From Bugula neritina (taxonomy: Eukaryota > Animalia > Bryozoa): 64,000 nucleotides of DNA. The translations under genes were made by a program, and so were the position numbers. The notes below the pieces were generated by a model. It worked only from the letters and a program-made list of their open reading frames with translations, had not been told where the DNA came from and made no database searches. Location of the stretch: the NCBI GenBank assembly GCA_964035545.1, contig OZ037769.1, positions 4,445,929 through 4,509,928 of the forward strand, in the 5' to 3' direction. Positions 856 to 49,200 of this stretch are shown here, one piece after another; positions within the stretch are counted from its first letter, which is position 1, and each line of letters starts with the position of its first letter.

Positions 856-8352
<7,497 letters not shown>

Positions 8353-25698: not shown

Positions 25699-28600
25699 AT
25701 GTCATCAAAAAATGAAGATTATTACGATGTCCTTGGCATCCCACGTACAGCCACCTCAGCTGAGATAAAGAAAGCATACAGGTAAGCTGGCAGCAATTTC
25801 TAGAAGTTGTTAGAACCAATAACTATGGGTACTTGAAGGGAATTCAACCAACTCTATTGGTACTAAAAGGAAGTTTTAATTCCAGCCTTTCATTGTCCCC
25901 TTGTTAAGTAATGTTTGTATTAAGTTAAATTCTTTGTTAGTTTGTGTTGAGGATTGACTAGAAGTTGAAGGAGCAAATTACTGAATGAAATTATCTTGTA
26001 TGTGGAACAAATAGCTGTAAAACTGCTATTTTATAGTGACATTTTATATTATGTTGTGTGGACTGTTTTTATATCCTCCTGAAATCACAATGTTTACTTC
26101 ATTTCTCTTGTTTCAGTACTAAGATATAAAACATCTAAAGAATGCATTTATATAGAAATTGCTATAGCTACTAGCTATCTGTACCATGCAGCAACCACTG
26201 TTAGCGTTGTCATGATAATTATAATTAGTGTAAAATAAAATGTTGGTGTGCCGCAATTAATGCCTATGTTGGCTTCCTCATAATAATTGTAATGACTATT
26301 ACAATATTCATCTGCCTATGTATGTACATGCAGTAGCTATTCTAGCTCATTGCATATAATTAAAGCATTTCCATGCAAAATCAACTTGTAACTTTAAAGT
26401 GGTTTTTCAGTTCATTAAAATCTTTTCACTTTAACCAACATACAATACTGGTCATTAACTAAACTCTTTTTTCTTTCAGATCCAGGAAGCTAGAACTATT
26501 AAGTTGTCAACTTCAACCTTTACTTTCCATTATACATTTTACAAGTTCAGCTTCTTTTAGTAACTCTTTGTCTATCCTCTATGCACTTTAGTTCGATATA
26601 TCAGCTTCTTCTCTGTCATTCTAGAAAACAAGCCCTGCAGTGGCATCCAGACAAAAACCCTGAGAAGAAAGAAGAAGCTGAAACCAGGTTTAAACTTATA
26701 GCTGAAGCTTATGAAATACTGTCCGACAGTGAGTCCAACCAGATTCTTTATTTCTGACTTCCTGTGTATCATTTTTCTTCAAACAAAACACAAAATTCAA
26801 CCCTTCTGTTTTGGTGCAAAATAGAGGTTTCATTTTCACCTATAACTTTGCAATGATCTAGGTTAAGTGTATTTCTGCCTGATACTCATGCAGCTAGATC
26901 ACCATAATCATATTTATATATATGAGTCTTGGAAGTCCACTATACTCACTGATTGAGTTGTGTACTTTACGAAAAACTATTTAGTTTCTATAAACTTATT
27001 CATTACTTTCTATGTTCAACCACTTGATATCACAATTCATCTGCATTGATATAAACTTATTTCAGATATGCTAATAATATTTATTGAAGCAGAAAATACT
27101 TCCTATGAAAACTTTTAGTGTTGATAAATAAATCTAGAATATTCTAATGCTGATATTTTCCCAAAATTCATGGAAAGTTGTGCTTGTGAACACACCTACT
27201 TAATAGCCAAAATAATCATAAATACTGAACTTCAGTTTCATTTCACAAACACTAAGTTTATGTTGCTTTACCCCCTATTCACACTTGCCGTATTTTTAAT
27301 GTGTTCGGGCTGAAATTTTCAAAGTCCGCTATTAGGTACGATCTATGACACTTCATTGGACAATTATATCCAATGAATTAACGCAAAAGTTTTTCTGTCC
27401 AATAGGAGTCCGCCGCAACTTATTTGAATCAAGCAGTGTTTGATCCTACCGTACCGCAACGCCGTACAGGAAGCTCAGACATTTGTAAAAATGGCTGATA
27501 TTTGCTGTTACGGCGTACGATACGGTAAGTGTGAATGAGGGGTTAAGCTGCAGTTACACTAATTCCTAGTAACCTGGGATTTCCTATTTTTAGCACATAT
27601 TATTAAACCAGGCATTTGTAAGGTAGAAGAGATTACTTTTCTTGCTTCCGATTTTAACTTTCTCTTGTTAGAAGTTAATAGCAGCCACAATATACAGTTT
27701 TTAGTTTTTTTACCTCGAACAATTGTATGCAGTGACTTTCTGTTATAGTATAACATAACGTAGAAGCATGTTCAAAAGGTAATCTAGTGTCATTTAAATT
27801 AGGAAATGAATAAAACAATGCATTTAGCGAAACAATACAGTCTTATTTCAAATTGCAACTACTCCATTTCACACCGTCACCTACGATGGAGATTTGTAAG
27901 CTTCATCTGTATGGAAAAATCAACAGTCATCTCGGCTACTCCCAACTGCCTCTGGCTTTATACCAGTCACAACCTTTTTTTTTCTGTTTCGAAATAGTTA
28001 AACCAGTAGCCAGGTGTTTGTGCCTAGCTGTAAGGCTGACAGATTGTGTTCGTGATGTGTGGATGAGTATCACGTTCACAATCTAACAGCTATGAGGATG
28101 TGAAATGGCTTCACATCATGTCAGTGCTCTGACTCATTGATGGTAAATTAGCCTCAGCAGGTCTTAGTGATCCAGACAAGACTATATATCAACACATGGG
28201 CCAACAATACAAGGGAGCAGCCGTGATTTAGGCCCTAGAGGATAGAGTGTTTGCTTTATAAGTTTGAGCCCTGACAGAGGCCATTGGTGATGTCAGTCAT
28301 GTTGCTCTTTTGCCACATATGAATAAGTCCTTAGCCCAATCTAACAAAAAAAAAACCTTTCATTAAGGGTCTTCTCACAGGGATGGTGGCTATAAACCTG
28401 CGTGAAATTTTTTATGGGATAACAATACAGAGCATCCAACCTCTTTATTCAAAGGAATCACTTTTAGAGGTCCAGTACTGGTGTTGTATAAAAGTTTTCT
28501 AATTCTTGAGATGTTTTTTCGCTCAAGTAATATTTGAATGTTTTAGAGGAAAAGAGGCGGATATATGACAAGTATGGACACGAGGGGCTGACAGGAAATG

Positions 28601-31600
28601 AAGGCAGCGGCCGAGGGGGTCCTTCCTTTTCGGGTGCAAATTACTATGCGCACGAGCCTTTCAGTGGCTTCCACTTCCAAGACCCTATGGACCTGTTTCA
28701 GCAGTTCTTTGGAGCCTCTCCGTTTGAAGATGTATTTAGTAAGTAGAACCCTGGCTATGCAACTCAATGCCATGTTTTGGGGCAAGATGAAAACACTAGC
28801 TTTTCTTCTCTGAGCTGGAAATCCTTTACTCAATATGGGGAAATTCCTGCTCATTCAGTGTAACTGACGCTTTTGATAGTTGGGGTAACTTTTTCCTAAT
28901 GCTAATGAGTATATGTGCCAACACAAGTACCTGTCCATTCTAAACTAATGAACTGACAAGTGACAGCAGGTGAGTCAAATGACAGCAGGTGATGTGTGAA
29001 ATGACAGCATTGGTGACAGAAAACTATCTCCCACCCTTTTAGAGCAAATCTTTATGAAAATAATTACACATTAACTTGGTGCACAGGTTCCTAGTTGGCT
29101 GCTGTTACAATATCCACCTGCAATAGTTATTCTAATTAATTCATTTATTGTGCAAGTAATTTCTACCTCCAGGCATAAAAGTTCTTTGTTGGCATTTTTC
29201 CAATGACCTTAGGTATTATTTCAGGCTTGTAGTCACTGAAATATATTATATTTTAGTGCTTAGAATTATCGGTCTAGCGCTTTAGTTTACCATCTATGGC
29301 ACAGTCACCATTATATATCAGGATATCAGGCTAAAGTTGCACAAACCGTGGCTCATGGGCTACTTTTTGACTTCCATTTAATAATTACCAACCTAATGAG
29401 TTCTGTGATACACTTCATAGTATTCTACTCTGCAAGACTTTCCTTTGTTATAGGTCACTTGCCTAGACGAAGACCTCACGGTAAATGTAGCCTTAGTTTT
29501 CTTGGGTATAAGTGAAATAACCCGTAGCATCCCCTCCCTATGCTCAACTTGTTGTAGCCTAAGTTTTGTAGTAGAAGCAGTTGAAATAGCTGTTAGACCT
29601 GCTTGTATTGTTCAATTACTGAATTAATTCAACTCAACTAATACACACAAAAAGGATTTTAAACATTCTTACAAATTTCTTGGAAATTGAATTGACGAAG
29701 TGTCAATTACATTGATTTACTACTTGATTTCCTTATCAACGCATGTTTATACTAAATGAAAATTGCAGCATACATGAATCAGTAATCTACTGCTTTTTGC
29801 TTCATGTGGCAGGCATGTATTTGTTTTAGCATAATAAAGTTTTCCCTTCATATCTGCTAGCAGGTGTTCCGAGACCTTAGATAGTTAGGCCTGTGTACCG
29901 TGGTAACACCAATGCTCTCTTGTAATGCTGTGCAATATGTTGGTGCTTGTTTGTGGCGCTGCTGTAGTTCACGTTCTCAGAAACTGCTCTTTTATGCTGC
30001 TTCATCAAAGTTCAGATCCTGGTTGCCCCGCCACATCTGTAATCTACCTGCCAATCCCACTAAAACCTCCACCATAACCTTACCTGCATTCTGTTGCTAC
30101 TTAATTTATGTGCTGATTAGTTTGGAGTTGTATTCCCTCAGGCTAACAGGATTATTCTCTCAGGCTAGAAAACTAAAAATCAGCTTATGCAGTGTACAGC
30201 TTTTTCAGAATTTTGAGATATTTTTTACGATTCAATGAATTAAGTCCTTAGCCCGCTTTAACAAAAACCCTTTCCATCAAGGGGTTCTCACAGGGATGGT
30301 GACTATAAACTTGCGTGAGTTTTTTGCACAATTCAATGAAATCACAATTTTTATCCTTTAGTTAGGCATGCAATCATGAAAAGAAAAGTCCATGCTAAGC
30401 AATATTGCATTGCTATTTTTTATGGTCATGGTTAAAAGGCAGCCTAGCTAAATGTAAGCTCTCTCCATTATCACCCACTACTGGTATCCTCCATGTATTC
30501 CTCAAAGACACGTGCCGGTCTTCCTAACCATCTCATTTTGTAGCAATCTCAGCTATTAGACTAAGAGTTAAAGATAGATTTTATACAGTAGGAATTTGTT
30601 GAAAATTAATTAGTGCCCATAACCTGCTTCATAGATGCCTGCATGGCTTGTGACAACTTCGTTTCTGTGTGTACAGTGTCTGGCAACTGCTAGCATGCTG
30701 TTGTGTTGTAGTTCATATATCTGTTTTCTATTTAATATATTTGTTAGTTCTATGAGTTAAATTTTAAATGTATTTTTTTTGTAGATTTATAATTAATTAT
30801 GGCATATTACAATAACTTAATGGCGCTGCACCATCATCTTTCTCTTTTTACTAGAATATAGCAGACAGAAGAGTTTATGCTTCATGTGATGATTTATAAT
30901 ATAAAGTCTCTCTGCTGTATTTTTATGGTCAGAGCAAGCACTTTATAGTACTGAATCTAGATGTTCAGTACTACATAGGGGGAGGTAATTCCTATATTTT
31001 CCTATAATATTCTTTCAGGTCACACAGGTCGCACTCATCATTCCTCTAGACAGCACAATGCCCCGCACAGTATGCACGCTGCCAGCCCATTCGGCTTCGG
31101 CTTTTCCGGATTTGGAATGAATCACGGCCTGTTTCATGGTTTAAATAATGGTTTCCATGACGACTTCTTCAATGGAGGGTGAGATGTTGGTCTACTAAAC
31201 GAAAGAGTGTAATAATACTCCAGTGTAGTAATACAGTATACTATTTAGTGTAGTAATACAGTATACTATTTAGTCTTGTAATACAGTTTACTATTTAGTG
31301 TAGTAACACAGTATACTATTTAGTGTAGTAATACAGTATACTATTTAGTGTAGTAATACAGTATACTATTTAGTGTAGTAATACAGTATACTATGTAGTG
31401 TAGTAATACGGTATACCACTTAGTGTAATAATACGGTATACTATTTAGTGTAGTAATACAGTATACTATTTAGTGTAGTAATACAGTATACTATTTAGTG
31501 TAGTAATACGGTATACTATTTAGTGTAGTAATACAGTATACTATTTAGTGTAGTAATACAGTATACTATTTAGTGTAGTAATACAGTTTACTATTTAGTG

Positions 31601-46200: not shown

Positions 46201-49200
46201 GCAAAATTTATTCTTACTATTGTAGATTATTTTTCATTATAATATTATAAAACCCTGTATAGGTAAGAGTAACTATGAAGTATTATGATGAATGCTGCAA
46301 ATACTTGGATGTATTCAAAATGAAGAAAGTTTAAAGTTGAAACATAATAATTTTATTTTTTCAGTTAAATATATATTCAGCCTACCTTGTTGCTTTGAGT
46401 TGAGAATAGAAGCTAAATCATAACCACTGCCCATAGCCCTGCATTCAGCTTGAGCATCTGTCCAATTCTTTGGAGTTGTTTCTCCAAAAAGCCCAAAACA
46501 TTTATTGTCTAAAAGGCAATTACTAAAACATGACTCATGTCACACGGCAAATCAAAAGTCAGAGAGCAAAAAGTTCAATGCACGGCCTTTCAAAAACTAC
46601 ACTTTTGCAAAAAATAGCAGTAAATGTTAGAATCAATCTGTAGAAGGTAAACTTACCAAAGGAAGTAAAACCGTGCGGACAATACCCTAGTCCAGGTTCT
46701 GGAGTGGTTGTGGGAGGATACGTGACCCCATTTACTGGGCGCTGACATATGTGCCCCCTACTTTGCATGGCACAGTTAAAATCATTCCAGAAACCTGCAA
46801 AAGCATAAGCATTAAATATTATCTAAATAAAACAAAATCAATCAAATTGATCACAAGTATTGCTGTTTATGACTGGTGGGAAAAATCTAATAATAAAAAT
46901 ATCAAAGTTAAAAGTTGTTTATAATTTTTAACATTAATTTCTATCATTTTTGAGTTAACAAAATCATAATAGACAACTTTATAGAGAGCAGCCTTGGTCT
47001 AGGGGTTGGAGCGTTTGCTTAGTAAACACAAAGTCATGGGTTTGGGGTTTTACTGGGTTAGAACCCCAGTAAAACTATTGGTGATGTTAGGAAGTGCATC
47101 TAGTCATAATTGCTCCTGTGTCACATATGAATAAGTCCTTAGCCCACATTAAAATACCCTTTTCATCAGGGATTCTTACAGAGATAGTAACTATAAACTT
47201 GCGTGAGTTTTTTTATAATAGACCGTGTTTTATAAATAAACTTGGCTAAGTAAGAGGGGTGGCATGCAGGGTGTACCTTGTTCATTACTAATCTGAGCAC
47301 ACATCTCAGCATTACCACTACCAGTAGGTTCACTTTTTGCCCACAGAACATAATAAAAGGGAGCTCCGTTAACCCACCTGTTGAGTAAACAAACAACCAG
47401 ATTAGAAACTAAGGCTATTACCGCTATCATGATACATCTGGACACAATTCTCAGCTCCACCATGTTTAGAAGGTTCTCCCTCGTACCAAGGAGCAAAGTC
47501 TACAGCTGAGCCGTCAACCCAACTAAAATACACGGCATCATGCTATTAACAGCATTGCTGCCGAGTCGCATAAAGTTGAGTAAAACGCTGCCTATAGAAA
47601 ATTAGTAAAATGCTGCCAACAGCAGTTGGGTAAAGGCAGCCAGAAGAGCATAAACTCATTCCCTAAAGTATTTCAACATCAAATAATGTCATAGAATACT
47701 CTAATTAGCACCACGAAAACAACTTACCCCCAGTCTTTACCACCATACTGTGTTAGTCCGATAGACCAATGTCTTTGGCTAGTCTTGGTTATCTACGAAA
47801 TAGCAAGTTTAATGAAAATGCAATTCAAACTCAGTAAAAACATGTAAATATTTTTTGCTAGTAATAGACAGAGAAAGTATATGTCACCCAGTTTTACGAC
47901 AGGTCCAGCTTAACTCTGCCTCATATTACAGACTGAGTGTTTGGGTTGTCTGCTCCCATGCACCACTTTGTTACACAAGTATAATTCTATTTTTTTACAT
48001 AGTCCAATTATCTATGCTACATTCAAAATTGAAACAACTACATGTATGTTTTAATGTGTGTTAGTATGTGCGTGTGCGTGCGTGAATGCCAGTGTGTGTG
48101 TGTGTATGCGAGCGTGTGTGTGCGAGTGCGCCTGTAAGCATATATAGCCCAAACTATCTCACTATAGCCTTAGAATACAACACCTGTGAGGTAATAAAAG
48201 CATTCTCCTCCTTTGTATGAATCACCACGAGATGCGAGTTTTCATTCTCACAGTCTTTCTTTGCTTCATGCCAGGACAGATACTCCTGTCTGAACTTGTA
48301 GCAGTTGCCAGTGAACTGCAACCAACCAGGATCACATTTACCTGCAAAAGTCACTTGAAATGCAATGTCACACACACTATCAGCAGCACAAAATAACATC
48401 TTGCAACAAATGCCTTGTATATGTACAGATGCCAAGACTTTGCTGTGCAAATGTAGTAGCTAATTCAGAGTGATACATATAGACTGAGTTCCTTACCTTG
48501 TACGCCTGGAATTCTGCTAGGTGTAGGAAGTGTAGTAGTAGGCATCAGTGTGGCTGTCAAGGTGCCTAAAATAATTATTGCAGTCTTACCAAACCCTATC
48601 AACAGCATTATAAAGTGATTTAAACAAGCCATACAAAAAAATTTTTCACAATGTATGTAACACGAAAATCTAGATGAAGTTGGGTTTGTATAAACAGCTG
48701 AAAGTTCAACAGAGCCTCTTTTTGAAATTAATCTTATATTTGATGCTATGGTAGAATCCGCTAACCTGCAGGAACCTGACAGACATAGTCATGACTCGTG
48801 GGGCAGTACTTGTCATTCCATGTCATTGTGACAGGCCCTCTAAACTCAGTCTTAATATTAGCCACAACACAGTTCTCCAACATCCTGTTATCATTAGGTT
48901 CATCTTCATTCCAAGCCACCATGTCAAGGTTACTACCATCTGACCATTGATATCCTACAAGTTACATAATCTCCTGGTGGTAATTTCATATCAAAAATAT
49001 TACAAGAACTTTGAAAAAACTGAACAAAAACTTTCAACACATCCTTGTAGATCAGTTAAATGTTTTCTATTGATTTATATTAGTTGTCCGTCTATATGTA
49101 GGTAAACTATTAGAAATAAAAACTCTGAGTAAACTTTACCAAGTGGAAACTACATAATACAGGAGCAGCCTTGGTCTAAGGGTTAGAGCGATTGGCGTAG

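Follow-up and report, generated by a model that had tools for sequence, protein, structure and literature searches.

One domain of a receptor built from many C-type lectin domains (CTLDs) in the bryozoan Bugula neritina is probably made in two forms, by either/or splicing of two tandem exons, A and B, each of which encodes a version of the long loop of the same domain. The pair lies on the minus strand of a 64,000-nt stretch of genomic DNA (assembly GCA_964035545.1, contig OZ037769.1, positions 4,445,929 to 4,509,928), which in its whole length is called the window below and whose numbering is used unless a locus of a relative, given by an L number, is named. The two exons are adjacent, homologous and equal in length and phase, and both are under purifying selection in three lineages. 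The exons of the affected domain (CTLD9) and the segments between them are arranged as follows.

48341-48184, minus strand: exon 1 of the domain, with its first three cysteines, ending in phase 0 (AG at 48343-48342, GT at 48183-48182).
47792-47728, minus strand: exon 2, constitutive, 65 nt, encoding the WIGL-type strand and ending in phase 2; orthologous exons are present in L017, L018, L024 and L027.
47660-47523, minus strand: 3′ part of the intron upstream of A, unusually conserved relative to L017.
47522-47422, minus strand: exon A, 101 nt, phase 2 to phase 1, long-loop version with the motif EPS, beginning WVDGSA.
47421-47378, minus strand: spacer between A and B, 44 nt, containing a branch-point-like TTCTAAT.
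47377-47277, minus strand: exon B, 101 nt, phase 2 to phase 1, alternative long-loop version with the motif EPT, beginning WVNGAPFY.
47276-46795, minus strand: intron from B to exon 4, 482 nt, in which tblastn detects no further loop-like exon.
46794-46657, minus strand: exon 4, constitutive, starting in phase 1 and encoding the WND strand, the final two cysteines and the linker that leads to the next CTLD; orthologues are present in L018, L024, L026 and L027.

Both A and B are preceded by AG and followed by a donor (GTAATA for A and GTACAC for B), both are open in the frame dictated by exon 2, and both pass phase 1 to exon 4. Their homology is significant (BLASTP, E 2e-8), with 58 of 101 nucleotides and 11 of 33 amino acids identical, and no third copy of the loop exon was detected by tblastn between the flanking exons. 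Adjacency, homology, a common length class and identical phases, which extend to the most distant pair available (101 and 104 nt in L027), are the features of a tandem duplication, and in the window as well as in L017, L023, L026 and L027 both copies are open and retain their splice sites. No trace of the duplicated unit was found in the flanks, the spacer being unlike the 44 nt upstream of A and the 44 nt downstream of B. Inclusion of a single exon is the only outcome that preserves the reading frame: joint inclusion adds 202 nt (205 nt in L027) and joint skipping adds none, both of which shift the frame, and reading through the spacer meets TAA and alters the frame as well. An earlier note on this DNA, made from the sequence alone, had described a tandem pair of homologous 101-nt exons running from phase 2 to phase 1 and had argued that using both or neither would be unproductive; coordinates, splice sites and the BLASTP match agree with the description, and the arithmetic of lengths bears out the argument. 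The spacing of 44 nt with TTCTAAT near the donor of A was likewise described correctly, the motif occupying spacer positions 15-21 and placing the putative branch A 20 nt from the donor of A and 24 nt from the AG of B, and the paralogous split loop exon at 40488-40390 is indeed single and reads EPN.

That B is a coding exon can be argued from the window itself. None of the 43 nucleotide differences between A and B falls in the seven canonical CTLD scaffold codons (W, G, W, E, P, E and C; 21 nt in total), an outcome with a probability of 1.3e-6 if differences are placed randomly. The openness of B taken alone is weak evidence, since a random derivative of A with 43 differences would be free of stops with a probability of about 0.17. 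The signatures EP[ST] and C-x-Q are common to A, B and the orthologues of A and are missing from 15 other loop exons collected from this genome and its relatives; the source of B was therefore an A-type exon rather than another domain.

A sister lineage is represented by two genomic Logan contigs, L017 and L023 (runs SRR4020080 and SRR4020081), which are about 87% identical to the window and were reached via one protein cluster matched by the open frame around B. Both exons are intact there, with unchanged splice sites and a spacer of 44 nt; in L017 the orthologue of A is at 585-683 and that of B at 730-828. The mismatches between the window and L017 are distributed unevenly over the region.

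Exon A: 4 of 101 nt.
Exon B: 3 of 101 nt.
Exon 2: 4 of 65 nt.
Introns flanking A and B: 13 of 248 nt.
Distal intron: 80 of 392 nt.

Compared with the distal intron, both B (Fisher test, p 4e-6) and A (p 2e-5) are significantly conserved, and between L017 and L023 the differences are confined to introns. The conservation extends beyond the exons: the 450-nt block 47660-47211, comprising the 3′ part of the upstream intron, A, the spacer, B and the 66 nt that follow it, matches the sister sequence at 95.6% of positions, as compared with 80-87% for the distal intron and 94% for the constitutive exon 2, and its intronic portion 47660-47523 has 6 mismatches in 138 nt where the distal intron differs by 13-20%. 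Neither a repeat nor an RNA structure that would explain the conservation of 47660-47211 was found. Conserved flanks are typical of regulated exons, and because the whole block is conserved the sister comparison alone cannot separate coding from regulatory constraint.

A distant lineage is represented by L026 and L027 from the ENA assemblies ERZ1740059 and ERZ1740070, which were found by a metagenome scan with an alignment of exon 4; an earlier metagenome scan with the frame of B had given no match. In L027 the order of elements is the same as in the window, namely exon 2 ending in phase 2, A, a spacer of 55 nt, B, an intron of 328 nt and exon 4, with the alternative exons placed as follows.

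L027, 1447-1547: A-type exon, 101 nt, with the donor GTAATA as in the window.
L027, 1603-1706: B-type exon, 104 nt, with one extra codon, the same phases, an open frame and splice sites present.

Between the window and L027 synonymous sites are saturated (proportion of synonymous differences, pS, 0.68-1.0), and their introns align no better than shuffled sequences, so that no intron conservation is seen. At this distance A keeps 20 of 33 residues (omega, the ratio of replacement to synonymous rates, about 0.17) and B 16 of 33 (omega about 0.25). When B of L027 is compared with the whole 216-Mb genome, the top match is exon B (E 3.5e-5, the next match being at 0.25), and the two are reciprocal best hits; in the tree the B exons are united in one clade (support 91/90). 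Within the distant lineage, L026 and L027 differ by 7-24% in introns and show no change over the 104 nt of B and the 55 nt of the spacer and 3 changes over the 101 nt of A, all of them synonymous. Stops or indels in relatives, which the earlier note had proposed to look for, were not encountered, B being open and in phase in L017, L023, L026 and L027 apart from the extra codon of the latter, and the suggestion of selection on both exons is substantiated by their intactness in three lineage groups and by the omega values. Taken together, the comparison excludes neutral decay of B and indicates that it already was a coding exon, next to A across a short spacer, when these lineages diverged, and has remained one. 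As a separate feature of L027, a tandem 12-nt unit in about 8 copies (1280-1375) occupies the intron upstream of the A-type exon and is absent from the window.

The pair is not found in every lineage. Outgroup orthologues, L018-L021, from ENA assemblies labelled BRYA16-1, were found by a representative search with exon 4 and keep the same order of three CTLDs as the window gene; each carries a single 101-nt A-type exon (6792-6892 in L018) with the strong donor GTAAGA, a 69-nt intron and exon 4. A second locus, L024, also has one 101-nt loop exon (986-1086), followed by a 77-nt intron before exon 4, and both L018 and L024 are found in ERZ1740065 at about 12x coverage. The exons 4 of these two loci are nearly the same (41 of 45 amino acids, 91%, synonymous divergence, dS, 0.24), whereas their loop exons share no more than 48% identity and have saturated dS. 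In the tree, calculated over 33 columns, the loop exon of L024 groups with the B clade (93/82), yet its best match in the window genome is exon A. Either the pair is older than the split from the outgroup and was resolved there into two loci, or it arose later, and the contrast between L018 and L024 may reflect splice variants resolved into paralogues or, as another possibility, gene conversion limited to the 3′ part. A more far-reaching scenario, in which an old A/B splice switch predates the split across which introns can no longer be aligned, retunes the ligand surface of a single domain and was resolved in the outgroup into the same two versions at two single-exon loci (L018 and L024), is conceivable, and we regard it with more doubt than confidence.

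As to the mechanism, the arrangement suggests a tandem duplication of the exon for the long loop of one CTLD as the origin of A and B, of which each mRNA would take a single one while the WND strand and the remainder of the domain stay unchanged; joint inclusion and joint skipping are both expected to shift the frame. From the position of splicing signals we infer how the two would be kept apart. The splice from A to B would be disfavoured sterically, as a spacer of 44 or 55 nt would force any usable branch point to within about 25-35 nt of the donor of A; in any case it must be less than 50 nt from this donor because it has to lie inside the spacer, and should the branch point for B be located upstream of A instead, splicing from A to B would be likewise impossible. 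In the atlas of human mutually exclusive exons a branch point less than 50 nt from the donor serves as the criterion for steric interference (PMC5740500), a limit with which the short-spacer argument of the earlier note agrees for the spacers of 44 and 55 nt. For exons 4a/4b of OGDH, a related mechanism is reported in which branch points lie close to the 5′ splice site (PMC7969005). Constitutive introns near the pair range from 148 to 482 nt in the window and go down to 69 and 77 nt in relatives. Folding of 47740-47260 gave an unremarkable z of -1.46 and no support for a docking or selector RNA structure. A candidate pairing of the branch-point motif of the spacer (47408-47398) with the 3′ end of B (47295-47285), 10 of 11 positions, was rejected as probably fortuitous, one of its pairs being broken in L017 without compensation.

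Several observations weigh against either/or production of both forms. The steric step presumes that introns of 44-55 nt are not spliced in this genome; protein collections, queried with the frames around exon 4 and exon A and, as representatives, with exon 4, contained no spliced fragment of the gene, nor in the latter search any near-identical protein, and so are silent on the A and B forms alike; and the outgroup orthologue L018 carries an A-type exon only. The sister comparison is affected in two ways, since the changes in B between the window and L017 (one synonymous and two replacement) are uninformative, and the flanking introns are nearly as conserved as A and B, so that locally low divergence could explain the result of that test.

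These observations leave room for other explanations, the simplest of which makes B a dead, unused duplicate of A, an intronic pseudo-exon still open by chance. The missing spliced protein fragment with B, the lack of a Pfam match to B alone, the modest improbability of an open frame (probability of no stop about 0.17) and the outgroup orthologue without B are all compatible with a relic; it is nevertheless very improbable, since B keeps its frame, phases and splice sites in a lineage with saturated synonymous sites and unalignable introns, its scaffold codons are spared (p 1.3e-6), and, against 7-24% divergence of introns, it has 0 changes in 104 nt between L026 and L027 and 3 in 101 nt from the window to L017. 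Hardly more credible is a regulatory "poison" role, in which joint splicing of A and B would put the mRNA out of frame and direct it to decay. Such a frame shift would indeed follow from joint inclusion, and conserved flanking introns and spacer are usual for regulated exons; a poison exon, however, needs no coding capacity, whereas B keeps the CTLD scaffold, an open frame, a length of 2 modulo 3 and omega of about 0.25, and the spacer of 44-55 nt makes splicing from A to B mechanically unlikely. Somewhat less remote, though still unlikely, is that both exons are functional and one is nearly always used, the other being reserved for a rare stage or cell type or already in the process of being lost, which effectively leaves one protein. 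The outgroup loci with a single loop exon each and the stronger conservation of the A type (omega 0.17 versus 0.25) point in this direction; against it, neither B nor the spacer has changed between L026 and L027, and in the sister lineage B equals A in conservation, which argues for continuing use. Either/or splicing of A and B yielding both receptor forms thus appears the likely course.

If so, the two forms would differ in a piece of 33 residues comprising the W-x-x-G strand, the EPx loop, a Glu of Ca2+ site 2 and the third-last cysteine. By alignment, the swapped exon contributes the Glu of the motif, the hydroxyl residue that replaces the classical Asn, a Glu eight residues later and one disulfide cysteine, residues which we take, from established knowledge of CTLDs, to belong to Ca2+ site 2. 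The earlier note had seen a functional switch in the contrast of EPS and EPT. This is not borne out: the orthologues of A read EPS, and because both exons of L027 read EPS the contrast is a feature of the window clade and not a conserved distinction. What is conserved between types lies ahead of the EPx motif, in exon residues 3-11: the A type has WVDGSA followed by V or F and then DF in three deep lineages, and the B type has WVNGAPFY followed by Y or F and then VL in two. In both exons the remaining C-terminal two thirds vary freely save for scaffold residues. The isoforms would therefore have their Ca2+ ligands in common and differ in the loop surface as well as in the strand and the first loop that adjoin the sugar site. 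Because residues 3-11 and most loop positions differ and the ligands of the Ca2+ site are kept, the isoforms probably present different ligand surfaces on this one domain. The comparison with Dscam-like diversification drawn in the earlier note is an overstatement, the choice being only two-way.

The six cysteines of a long-form CTLD are distributed over exons 1, A/B and 4 as expected, and both A and B align over their full length to the long-loop region of solved CTLDs, the best solved match being human CD23 for A (E 1.6e-5) and carbohydrate-recognition domain 4 (CRD4) of the macrophage mannose receptor for B (E 0.013). Searched alone, A scores 19.2 bits against Lectin_C, under the cut-off of 22.6 as expected for one third of a domain, and B alone reaches no Pfam match. 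E16 and E24 are present in both exons and WND opens exon 4, which is the Glu-plus-WND combination of a sugar-binding CTLD; the EPN or QPD tripeptide of classical sugar-binding CTLDs is absent from both A (EPS) and B (EPT). Two features describe the host gene.

63018-33471, minus strand: approximate extent of the gene, with at least a dozen CTLDs in small exons followed by a Thr-rich stalk and one transmembrane helix.
33830-33471, minus strand: open reading frame of the stalk and transmembrane part, Thr-rich, with one hydrophobic helix and a basic tail.

Exon pieces match Lectin_C (Pfam PF00059) in the correct order from about 63.0 kb to 34.7 kb on the minus strand, and the combination of tandem CTLDs, a single transmembrane helix and a short tail is that of mannose receptors. 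The designation "mannose-receptor-type" used in the earlier note holds for the tandem CTLDs and the transmembrane part and does not hold for the N-terminus, as neither FNII nor another N-terminal domain was found at the locus. Matches of FNII (PF00040) in the 216-Mb genome are confined to contigs C1, C2 and C4, with none on the contig of the window (C5), and the 10 kb upstream of the first CTLD contain no CTLD, FNII or ricin-like open reading frames, the cysteine-rich domain not having been searched by its own profile. The gene thus encodes a type I membrane protein with many CTLDs that is not a true member of the mannose receptor family.

A second cluster of this kind is located at C1:5119113-5172378 and, with FNII at 5142867 and 5172259, is nearer to the true mannose receptor architecture; some of its loop exons are 101 nt long and run from phase 2 to phase 1, and no tandem pair was detected in this cluster. 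Introns of the lectin gene in the window contain CA-rich microsatellites at 48170-48060 and 40375-39950, the latter holding a 151-codon frame that is open by chance and runs into the real WND exon. Other genes in the window are indicated by a DnaJ-like open reading frame at 28534-28746 and a carboxylesterase-like one at 3637-4122 that follows a (CT)n run, both on the plus strand.

Of the mannose receptor family, MRC1, MRC2, PLA2R1 and LY75 are likewise type I membrane proteins with many tandem CTLDs, and it is CRD4 of MRC1 that B matches best; unlike them, the bryozoan gene has no detected FNII or ricin-type cysteine-rich domain at its locus, more CTLDs and a Thr-rich stalk. CD23 (FCER2) resembles the affected domain in the motif itself, reading EPT in the alignment where classical lectins have EPN, the same hydroxyl substitution as in A and B, and differs as a single-CTLD type II protein without alternative loop exons. 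With respect to splicing, FGFR1-3 possess mutually exclusive exons IIIb and IIIc for the C-terminal half of Ig domain III. As in the bryozoan, homologous exons in tandem code for that portion of a single extracellular receptor domain which contacts the ligand, and the choice between them changes the binding surface, presumably also in the bryozoan, and leaves the rest constant; the differences are the fold (Ig as opposed to C-type lectin), the absence of a kinase and the fact that either/or use in the bryozoan is deduced from sequence, and exclusion in FGFR relies on regulators and is not known to depend on a 44-nt spacer. Closer in this latter respect are exons 2 and 3 of alpha-tropomyosin, a pair whose exclusive use is sterically enforced, together with OGDH and human mutually exclusive exons: a short intervening intron puts the branch point near the upstream donor, and the exons are tandem duplicates equal in length and phase, the difference being that the branch point in our case is only predicted, from the motif TTCTAAT/TTCTAAC.

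Diversity among C-type lectin receptors is commonly attributed to duplication of genes and domains, and a full-text literature search found no description of an alternative pair of loop exons in a CTLD. If both forms are made, an exon switch that swaps the binding loop of only one domain would constitute a cheap third route of diversification, comparable to FGFR IIIb/IIIc. Two versions of the loop on one constant scaffold would represent a natural experiment which could reveal positions outside EPx that govern the choice of ligand, and the spacer of 44-55 nt would offer a clean test case for steric exclusion beyond vertebrates and insects. Should the more tentative scenario for the outgroup also be true, the locus would illustrate how, in nature, alternative splicing and gene duplication can substitute for each other in a receptor of innate-immune type.

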